This document shows, one piece after another, positions 38,406 through 41,400 of a stretch of DNA of 64,000 bases (its first letter is position 1; each line of letters starts with the position of its first letter). Both the position numbers and the translations under genes were made by a program. A model generated the notes under the pieces. The model was given only the letters and a program-made list of their open reading frames with translations, ran no database searches and was not told where the DNA came from. Source of the stretch: Zygnema circumcarinatum SAG 698-1b (taxonomy: Eukaryota; Plantae; Zygnematophyceae); NCBI GenBank assembly GCA_037447605.1, contig CM074804.1, forward strand, positions 4,379,909 to 4,443,908, read 5' to 3'.

Positions 38406-41400
38406 TTAAACCACCTGGTAGCTATCCACCACAAGCTGAGTCCGCCCTGCGTACTTAACCGGAGCTCCGGATTGGGTCGCTGCCACTTGGGCCACCTGCA
38501 GGAGTGAAAAGAGGTCCCAGACTTTGATCAGTTAGAAACTGGTGCGAAGGGGGGAAGCGTAGAAGGAGAGAGTGAGAGAGAGAGAGAGAGGGTGGAGGGT
38601 GGAGGGGAGAGGACAACAGATGTGTCAGACTTAGAACAATCAAGGGAGGGGAGATGGAAGGGAGGAGGAGGAGAGGGGTGTGGAGAAACAAGAAAGAGGA
38701 ATGGGAAATAGAGAAAGAATCCACTACCCAAATCAAGAAGGCCCAGCTAAGAAACTATCAGTCAGCAACACCCGTTCAAATTGGTAAACGCATACAATCA
38801 AGATCAGGACTAATATGGAAAGCAACGAGGGCAAAATGGGTAGAAGAGATTTTACCTTGACATCACAGAATGTTTTGTTAGAAGTAAACTTAACATCGAT
38901 GGGGAAGAACACATCCGGATTAGCAGCCGGCACTACAAACTCCATTGAGCCACTGCAAAAATCCCCATTCAGATAGAGAAGGTGAACATACAAACTACAC
39001 CATACAAACAATGGCACAAGCTCACACAGTTGATGTCGTTCCGCTCTGTACGATATGAACCATTGGAATGAAATATATAGCCCACTGAGATTAACACACA
39101 CTTTCCGAACACACCGACCTAACCAATCTCGACACTGAACTAATTCACACTAATGAAAATTGCTCATAGAAAATGAAAGCAGATGGGTCGGTTCCTCATC
39201 CGGTGTTCACGGCTGGAGCTGGGCAATACAGGCTCTACAAGAAGGTGTCTTGGAGTGAAACTGATGCAGATGGCATGGGAGATTGGGTCTCACTTGCGGT
39301 TTGTGTTGTCTATCAGGACAATGCTCCACTCAAGCACCGATCTCCGAGAATCGTACCTGCAGAACAAGTTGCATGATTTATGAAGAGAAAGTCAAGCTCA
39401 CTCCGTCGTTTTAGAAAGCATGTAAGGCTTGCCATTGAGGACAAGGGCTGGCTTACCTAAATGCCGACATGTAATAAGTTATTAATCATTAAAAGGGACA
39501 ACGACATGATCATTCAACATTGCGCTCTCATCGCAAACGGAAGAAGTTGTTGTTGAATGACACGAACCCCCACCAGGGCTGATCTCAGCAGTCAAAGGAA
39601 GTGGCATAGAAGCATGTTCCTTAGCATAAAGAGATCGCAAGAAAATAGCCACTTCAAAAGCTTTTCTTTCGATACTGCCCCCATTATACTAACTTACACA
39701 TAGGTAACTGCTTGAGTGAAATCAGCCATCCGAGTGCAGATGGACAAGGACATTCTAATGTACGCAAACAATGGAGCTTTGTTGTTTCAAGATTGTGAAA
39801 ATGACCTACGATTGAGATGCTCATCCAAATGGAGAAAACATGGCATTATAGCCGGTAACAATCTCTCAGATGTATTAAAAAAAAAAAAAAACCACCTTCA
39901 CTTAATAGGCTCATAGACGCCTAAATCAAACAAGTCGGAACGTGAAATGTAGAGAGTAGGTACCTTGGCTCTCCATCATAGTCCTTCAATGTAGGGGCAT
40001 CTCGAAGCGCTGGAAGAGGAATAGTAATCATTACATTTTGGAGATCAAATGCGCTTGATGCTTCATATTCAATGTTCACGTAAGTCTCCCCACCAGAAAT
40101 AGAAGGCCAACAGTTGACTGCACCAAGACGGAATAAAATCAGTTCAAACTGCAAGCACAAAGACATGCTTCAGGAAAAATTTAAAACACAACACGTCATC
40201 GACCTGATGCAAAATAATTGCGCAGTCAATCGTACTGTGAGGAGAAAGAGGCTATCCAGAATCCGGTGATATACCTGCCAATAGCTGAAAGGGGATAATG
40301 GGAAGTGCACTTACTGCTGAGAGGAACTATTGATTCGTCTCGACTTTGCATTCTCCACTTCAAAATGCCTAAAGGGCTGCCAGTAGGGAACGGCCTTCCA
40401 GGATCCTTCAGACCAAGAATGTTGTCGTGGCCATACATGTTCTTATCAATATTCGGGTGAGTCTTGAATTGGAAGGACTTGTCTGCACCACCCTCGATCT
40501 GCGTCACCAGTTTTGCATCACACAACAACAGTCAGTGTAGAAATGACTGAACTGATGCAGAACTCACCAATGTGAAAGCATCACTACAAACAAGACAAGT
40601 GACAATAGCGAGTACATTAGAATTGAAACAATATTGACAAATCTGAGAGAAAAAACAAGACGTGAACAAATAAATTTGGTAACAAAACAAGAAACAGAAC
40701 CCTAAAAAATACTTATCCTGAAGAGTACGGTTTTCTTTCGGAAGCTTTGGATTACGATGGTGATGCTCTTAATGTAATTCGTCCGAATAATTATCCTAAT
40801 TTTCCTGGTTGTCAGGTTCTCATTCGTGTCCTAGGAGCTCTGTGGATGATAGGTAAAGGCCAGAAAGATGATAAAATCTTAGCAATAAATGCGGCCGACC
40901 CCCATTTTTCTCGTTTAAAAGAATTAAAAGGTGTGGCCCTAGTAAATTAAAGGTAAAGCCAAATAAAGCTTACAAAGACCCGGATGTAGGCATCTTCCTC
41001 CTTCAAAACCGTAAGTGCCATTGTGCCTTGCAGTTCCAGATTCTCCATTCCACCGTCCCTTTTCCAAATCACCACCAACCTCTCCTCTATAGTGACTGTG
41101 ATGGGATCTGTTATTGGAATGACAGTCTTGGCACCAACAACAGCCACAGGAGCATCTTCCACAATAACTTCTCCCTCAGCCTTCAAGGATTCTAAGAACT
41201 GGTTTGCTTTCTGAGCCTTCCCGAGCTGCATACCCATCCCCTTTGAAGGTGCACCCATGTTTAGACCGCCTCTACCTGCAAAACGTGATGAATGAGGAAG
41301 ACAATAGAATGAGCATAGGCATATGATACTGCAAAAAAAATACATTAGAAAACTATGTACAGTCAGTACTGCATGCTTCCGCACAAATGCTTTCCCCATG

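Follow-up and report, generated by a model that had tools for sequence, protein, structure and literature searches.

How did a piece of what reads as a bacterial inorganic pyrophosphatase (PPase) gene come to lie, in antisense orientation, within an intron of the delta-COP gene of a streptophyte alga, and what kind of organism did it come from? The locus is in a 64,000-nucleotide stretch of contig CM074804.1 (assembly GCA_037447605.1, positions 4,379,909 to 4,443,908, forward strand) of Zygnema circumcarinatum SAG 698-1b; this whole stretch is referred to here as the window, and all positions are counted from its first nucleotide. The analysis described below indicated that the fragment is quite probably what remains, without function, of bacterial DNA that was acquired horizontally, that it came from a Mollicute like the Mollicutes-related endobacteria (MRE) or from a close unsampled relative of these, and that the acquisition was old rather than recent.

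An uninterrupted frame encoding about 75 residues of the PPase core had been proposed from the sequence in an initial annotation of the window, and this proposal was borne out. The frame is on the plus strand and is free of stop codons at 40705-40947 (81 codons). Residues 2 to 75 of its translation matched positions 32 to 105 of the 153-position Pfam profile Pyrophosphatase (PF00719) with an E value of 3.6e-17 and a score of 63 bits, the curated cut-off for this profile being 23.5 bits. In a search of solved structures, 43 PPase chains matched the same span of the frame, and the plant cytosolic PPases 6mt1, 5ls0, and 4lug were the top matches (E of ~1e-12). A profile hidden Markov model (HMM) built from the 12 closest relatives, referred to as the clade HMM, aligned from ~40708/40714 to 40938 at 96 to 97 bits. 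An upstream extension of the homology to 40654, seen in tblastn and HMM alignments, gained 1 bit only and was equaled by 17% of shuffled upstream segments; therefore, it was not counted as homology. On the other side, no PPase homology was found 3' of 40938 up to the splice site. On the basis of PF00719, the clade HMM, and protein identities of 57 to 64%, the segment at 40708..40938 of the plus strand was assigned to a family I PPase gene of the Mollicutes type (MRE-like), of which it is a dead fragment. It corresponds to about residues 40 to 115 of a protein of ~165 to 185 amino acids (aa), with 75 to 78 aligned residues, and contains neither a stop codon nor an insertion or deletion (indel). 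Missing are ~38 aa at the N terminus and ~50 to 70 aa at the C terminus, so that both ends of the fold are absent, and there is no ATG. Membership in family I was thus indicated by the profile match, whereas the complete domain (~153 positions, from the N-terminal EIPxGxxxKYE to the C-terminal YK) is not present.

The closest relatives, to which the identities of 57 to 64% refer, were PPases of MRE. Several collections pointed in the same direction. Among 1.84 billion representative proteins, the top single-domain match was P0005 (53% identity), the gene for which reads TGA as tryptophan. A scan of GTDB genomes with the single fragment protein as the query found nothing; a GTDB genome profile search seeded with a 5-row alignment gave as the best genomes the Mycoplasmataceae metagenome-assembled genome AM1032 (49%) and Spiroplasma endosymbionts (47 to 49%). 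The host of the MRE AM1032 is the fungus Linnemannia gamsii (PMC10507103). In the JGI metagenomes, a tight group of contigs from soil, rhizosphere, and ectomycorrhiza was found at 53 to 59% identity, with a GC content of 27 to 33%, and several of the soil-type contigs carry a PPase gene with an in-frame TGA at a conserved tryptophan position. The nearest sequences came from a search of 5.8 billion clusters, namely, P0195 (64%), P0196 (62%), and P0201 (57%). Of these, P0196 carries the label Cetraspora pellucida and P0201 the label Entrophospora sp. SA101, and the two hosts belong to the arbuscular mycorrhizal fungi. The Cetraspora contig (L164; GCA_910591925.1, CAJVPW010038332.1) has a GC content of 33.5%, and its PPase open reading frame (ORF) reads through two TGA codons, which together indicate an endobacterial contig within the fungal assembly. 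Public Mucoromycota assemblies are reported to contain undetected MRE contigs (PMC11423566).

Three further observations were made on these records. The coding sequence annotated on the Cetraspora contig as a partial fungal gene (85-454 and beyond) is this Mollicutes-type PPase, the annotation stopping at the first TGA. By summed score, the search of representative proteins was led by P0001 and P0003 (621 to 646 aa), P0002, and P0010, which contain two to three complete PPase domains in tandem. The 148-aa metagenomic ORF P0009, on a 592-bp contig (ENA ERZ28573528), has a PPase segment of nearly the same span as the fragment (YPEEYG...ELKD) followed by unrelated, compositionally different sequence, and chimeric assembly of the contig, a frameshift, or a further case of an inserted fragment may account for this.

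No algal protein closer than the MRE-type sequences was found among the 1.84 billion representatives or the 5.8 billion clusters. Moreover, the fragment had no relative among the IMG/VR viral contigs, so that a viral donor, which had been offered as an alternative to a low-GC bacterium, is without support. The low-GC bacterial source itself was upheld, and it could be refined to a Mollicute of the MRE kind from the phylogenies, the scores of the group HMMs, and those nearest relatives that carry names. Even the best match reaches no more than 64% identity, which means that the donor itself has not been sampled. The window was also searched for further sequence from this donor: tblastn with 203 ORFs of MRE-type contigs matched only this locus, and a scan of the window for ORFs with a donor-like contrast between the GC contents of first and third codon positions (GC1 and GC3) found nothing bacterial-looking.

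Phylogenetic analysis had been suggested as a check on horizontal transfer, and a placement in a bacterial clade was obtained. In a maximum-likelihood tree of 64 rows, a starred split with support of 100/95 set 33 Mollicutes-type rows, including the fragment, apart from plants, other bacteria, and archaea; the plants formed a clade of their own (100/100). In a second maximum-likelihood tree of 51 rows, to which named MRE rows were added and for which a careful search was used, the Mollicutes-type clade was supported at 97/91 (starred), and the fragment was recovered in a 30-row MRE-type clade together with the Cetraspora, Entrophospora, and Linnemannia AM1032 rows (support, 93/98; stem length, 0.33). 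The group HMMs gave the fragment 97 bits for the MRE-type group, 90 bits for the Spiroplasma/Mycoplasmatales group, 76 bits for other prokaryotes, 74 bits for a second soil clade (clade2, seven rows with the motif LAPDGDELD), and 54 bits for plants. The signatures YPEEYG, LDYDGD, NYPxFPGCQ, and DDKILAxNA are common to the fragment and the MRE-type sequences, in contrast to the plant pattern YPHNYG...LCEDNDP. From these sequence comparisons, a Mollicutes-type origin of the fragment appears well supported, and a specifically MRE-type origin appears likely. The conserved TGA-encoded tryptophan positions of the relatives fall outside the retained segment, and genetic code 4 therefore cannot be read from the fragment.

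The composition of the fragment still resembles that of its bacterial relatives. Its GC contents at the first, second, and third codon positions are 0.57, 0.35, and 0.27, respectively, and the GC3 value compares with 0.25 to 0.32 in the homologous segments of the relatives and with 0.52 in the flanking host exons, in agreement with the initial annotation, which had described third codon positions rich in A and T and unlike those of the host exons. The protein sequence, in contrast, has decayed. Of 26 columns that do not vary among the 12 clade relatives, 9 have changed in the fragment; when each relative was left out in turn, those of the soil clade differed at zero to two such columns each and the more distant AM1032 MRE differed at five. 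Six of the eight catalytic positions within the span are retained. The other two lie in DGDPLD, which reads DGDALN in the fragment, and in MID, which reads MIG, so that the acidic residues of the DGDPxD and MxD segments are not all intact. In each of the two changed columns, all 12 clade members have aspartate, as do no fewer than 90% of a broader set of 16 relatives. The catalytic residues of Escherichia coli PPase in these segments are D65, D67, D70, D97, D102, and K104, and the two replaced aspartates correspond to the catalytic metal ligands D70 and D97. The claim that the fragment should be inactive was thus borne out: what is left is part of the gene of a family member and not an enzyme.

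The claim that the capture was fairly recent was not supported. With 9 of 26 invariant columns changed (35%) and two catalytic aspartates lost, the capture does not count as recent, and the DNA identity to the nearest genes is only 64 to 67%. By codon position, this identity was 0.67, 0.80, and 0.47, compared with 0.82, 0.95, and 0.60 among the relatives. These differences would correspond to roughly 0.2 to 0.3 additional substitutions per site since capture, distributed over all three positions and apparently largely unconstrained; part of the fragment's distance may stem from the unsampled donor lineage instead.

The host gene was identified as delta-COP because its exons have homologues that bear the name coatomer subunit delta and contain PF00928. 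It is encoded on the minus strand. The exon at 40974..41272, whose translation ends in ...EEDAYIRVF and is followed by GTAAGC, lies upstream of the intron in the sense of the gene, and the exon at 40315..40498 lies downstream; both were assigned from their translations and from RNA joints (at 40974 and 41272 and at 40498 and 40315, respectively). The intron with the antisense fragment (40499..40973, minus strand) had been delimited from the sequence alone, and these limits proved exact, with the PPase frame antisense within them: RNA contigs from runs X8 and X19 join 40498 to 40974 at a depth of 695 to 2078, and the joint has CT..AC, i.e., GT..AG on the minus strand. The intron is 475 nucleotides (nt) long, or ~243 nt without the insert. 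The neighboring introns at 40118-40314 and 41273-41426 were likewise confirmed by RNA contigs. Intron-retaining RNA contigs, such as X8 (535 nt; 40469-41003), which covers the entire intron and part of both exons, have a depth of 6 to 17, compared with 600 to 2300 on the exons. This level, ~1% of that of the exons and flat across the intron, fits unspliced pre-mRNA. The fragment is removed with the intron and has no detectable product of its own. Elsewhere in the window, an assembly gap of 30 N interrupts a proline/glycine-rich low-complexity stretch at ~37800-37950, and the ORF translations there contain X.

Comparison of presence and absence in relatives, another check that had been proposed, could be made with two related algae (L162 and L163), which were reached via the exon homologues and whose flanking exons are 71 to 82% identical to those of the host at the protein level (82% for the exon at 40315..40498 and its L162 orthologue). 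The delta-COP intron is at the identical position in all three algae, with a length of 475 nt in the window, 85 nt in L162 (4340-4424), and ~900 nt in L163 (~3919-4820). No PPase-like sequence was found in the orthologous introns of L162 and L163. The insertion therefore post-dates the splits from those algae.

The initial annotation had further described the homology as bracketed by a direct repeat, CCCTA, and had treated this repeat as a mark of the insertion. Both copies are present, the left one at 40700-40704 and the right one at 40937..40941 on the plus strand, at the end of the detectable homology. A telo-box, AACCCTAAA, at 40698..40706 on the plus strand includes the left copy, and this motif is native to the host and over-represented in the window: AACCCTAAA occurs 13 times compared with 0.58 times expected, and none of 100 shuffles reached 13. 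The left CCCTA is therefore host sequence and not an insertion mark. Moreover, a shared 5-mer was found in 50% of shuffled pairs of 25-nt boundary windows (P = 0.50), so that the repeat is at chance level as a signature of insertion. Were it nonetheless a true 5-bp target duplication, the empty site would read ...GAACCCTAGTAAATT.... The AACCCTAAA sites in the window are at 215-287, 2427, 5848, 9325, 13064, 26112, 40698, 46658, 54001, 60620, and 61265; the three copies within 215-287 may form a short interstitial telomere-like array or a promoter cluster.

Capture by a transposon of the Pack-MULE (Mutator-like element), Helitron, or MITE (miniature inverted-repeat transposable element) type was also considered and was rejected: no terminal inverted repeats were found around the insert, tblastn found no second copy of the fragment within the window, the DNA contigs are unbroken at the fragment, and CCCTA is at chance level. 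The simplest mechanism would be the capture of stray bacterial DNA during end-joining repair of a chromosome break. In the favored reading of the locus, ~230 bp out of the central part of a PPase gene of family I, from an MRE-type Mollicute, the type found in Mucoromycota fungi, or from a close unsampled relative, entered the nuclear genome and landed antisense in the delta-COP intron. The fragment has drifted without constraint and has lost two catalytic aspartates, but it keeps the codon-position composition of the donor.

Several other explanations were weighed against an old bacterial capture. Algal cultures are seldom axenic, and the insert is short and of foreign composition; hence, an assembly chimera, or contaminant bacterial reads joined into an algal scaffold, had to be considered. 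However, 20 sequencing runs of one organism contain the stretch, and in six DNA runs, which belong to three studies, all (100%) of the sampled words are present. Long reads or PCR across both junctions had been proposed as a check, and here the junctions were spanned by DNA contigs X2 and X6 (5562 and 1523 bp, respectively), which were assembled independently from two studies and are colinear with the window over both junctions with 0 differences; an assembly chimera is therefore excluded. RNA contigs from unspliced transcripts run continuously over exon, intron, and insert, and the insert is decayed, as the gene of a live contaminant would not be. There is next to no chance that the locus is an artefact of either kind. 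A functional element, i.e., a small plus-strand protein or an antisense RNA with a regulatory effect on delta-COP, for the sake of which the frame is kept open, might be suspected from 81 codons without a stop or a frameshift despite strong divergence, from the listing of a TTG/ATG-less ORF of 67 aa, and from the non-zero coverage of the intron in RNA runs. In simulations, however, a 75-codon frame stayed free of stops in 16 to 24% of cases (P = 0.24 at a divergence [d] of 0.2), i.e., in about one-fourth of cases at the estimated divergence, so that no selection is needed to account for the open frame. In addition, substitutions fall in the most conserved columns and in catalytic ones, both ends of the fold and the ATG are missing, the insert is missing in the related algae, and the RNA depth, at ~1% of the exon level and flat over the intron, is pre-mRNA-like. 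It is thus highly improbable that such an element is present.

The remaining alternatives concern the immediate source of the sequence. The plant cytosolic PPases at the head of the solved-structure matches would be expected if the fragment were a retrocopy or a captured piece of the alga's own PPase, a possibility that the initial annotation had named as refuting a bacterial origin. That origin from the host is very unlikely, given that the plant-group HMM scored 54 bits against 97 bits for the MRE-type HMM, that plants form a separate clade (100/100) on the opposite side of the starred 100/95 split, that an approximately unbiased (AU) test against a clade of the fragment and plants gave a P value of 0.042, that YPEEYG, LDYDGD, NYPxFPGCQ, and DDKILAxNA match the MRE-type and not the plant sequences, and that GC3 is unlike that of host genes. 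Organelle-to-nucleus transfer of fragments into introns is common. The fragment could accordingly be a secondary copy, in the manner of a nuclear mitochondrial DNA segment (NUMT) or another duplicated piece, of organellar DNA or of a full-length Mollicutes-type PPase gene that is, or once was, in the nucleus. A long-resident, expressed nuclear gene is expected to drift towards the host GC3 of 0.52, and the donor-like GC3 of 0.27, equal to that of the bacterial relatives, is still visible, which argues against descent from such a gene. Contigs X2 and X6 are unbroken at the fragment, and no identical copy therefore exists elsewhere at 31-mer resolution. The nearest proteins, moreover, are prokaryote-style sequences of the low-GC MRE type, and no algal protein in the representatives or clusters searched is closer. 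On balance, a secondary copy is unlikely, though it deserves somewhat more weight than a host origin.

Several points weigh against an old capture from an MRE-type Mollicute. The fragment is short (75 to 78 aligned residues, or 44 to 45% of the tree columns), its end branch measures 1.06 to 1.24 compared with a median of 0.27 to 0.3, and none of the starred clades that comprise half the rows or fewer includes it. The AU rejection of plant affinity (P = 0.042) is marginal, and a tree in which the fragment stands just outside all Mollicutes-type rows was not rejected (AU P = 0.44), so that exact nesting within the Mollicutes is unproven. With a nearest relative of only 64% identity, the unsampled donor need not have been a fungal endobacterium. 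A resident full-length or organellar copy could have been the immediate source, the searches for copies having covered the window and the 31-mer level. The absence of any indel over 231 nt at d of ~0.2 is somewhat unexpected under pure neutral decay, and the RNA contigs carry no strand information, which leaves room for weak antisense transcription.

What the locus adds is, in part, a further example of a known phenomenon, since dead bacterial DNA occurs in eukaryotic nuclei, and this new example is without function. The endobacteria from which its nearest relatives come are known from no hosts other than Mucoromycota, and it is these fungi that engage in the oldest plant symbioses; the recipient alga belongs to the sister lineage of land plants. 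It is conceivable, if rather doubtful, that an ancestral alga harbored an MRE-like Mollicute or lived in cell contact with a Mucoromycota fungus that carried such an endobacterium. If so, such a partnership would be placed in the algal relatives of land plants, and decayed fragments of other donor genes would be expected to be scattered through the genome. In our search of the literature on Mollicutes and Zygnematophyceae, no report was found that links MRE-type bacteria to streptophyte algae. The fragment is a weak hint of a past association, and one piece of 230 bp cannot establish a symbiosis; all that a single fragment proves is that DNA from a bacterium of this kind at one time entered the algal germ line. 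The locus also illustrates that a plausible target-site duplication can be merely a common host motif.

Among known systems, the plant cytosolic soluble PPases (Arabidopsis PPA1, with structures 5ls0/4lug, and 6mt1) share the Pfam family of the fragment and, as family I enzymes, are prokaryote-like, and the fragment matched them over the same 73 residues; they differ from it in their motifs (YPHNYG, LCEDNDP, and CADDP), in forming a separate, fully supported clade, and in their group score (54 versus 97 bits). The fragment resembles much more closely the MRE PPases from the Cetraspora pellucida and Entrophospora sp. SA101 contigs and from the AM1032 genome (CP125276), with which it shares a clade (93/98), 49 to 64% identity, the signatures YPEEYG, LDYDGD, NYPxFPGCQ, and DDKILAxNAxDP, and an equally low GC3. 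These genes are part of bacterial genomes, whereas the fragment lies in a eukaryotic intron and comprises the central 75 to 78 residues only, with two catalytic aspartates and seven other clade-invariant residues replaced. Bacterial or organellar DNA captured in nuclear genomes is known from Wolbachia insertions in insects and from the mitochondrial (NUMT) and plastid (NUPT) filler DNA at repaired breaks. Like these captures, the fragment is short, promoterless, and internally truncated, lies in non-coding DNA, shows neutral decay, and bears no hallmarks of a transposon; it differs from them in that its MRE-like donor type is known only from fungi.

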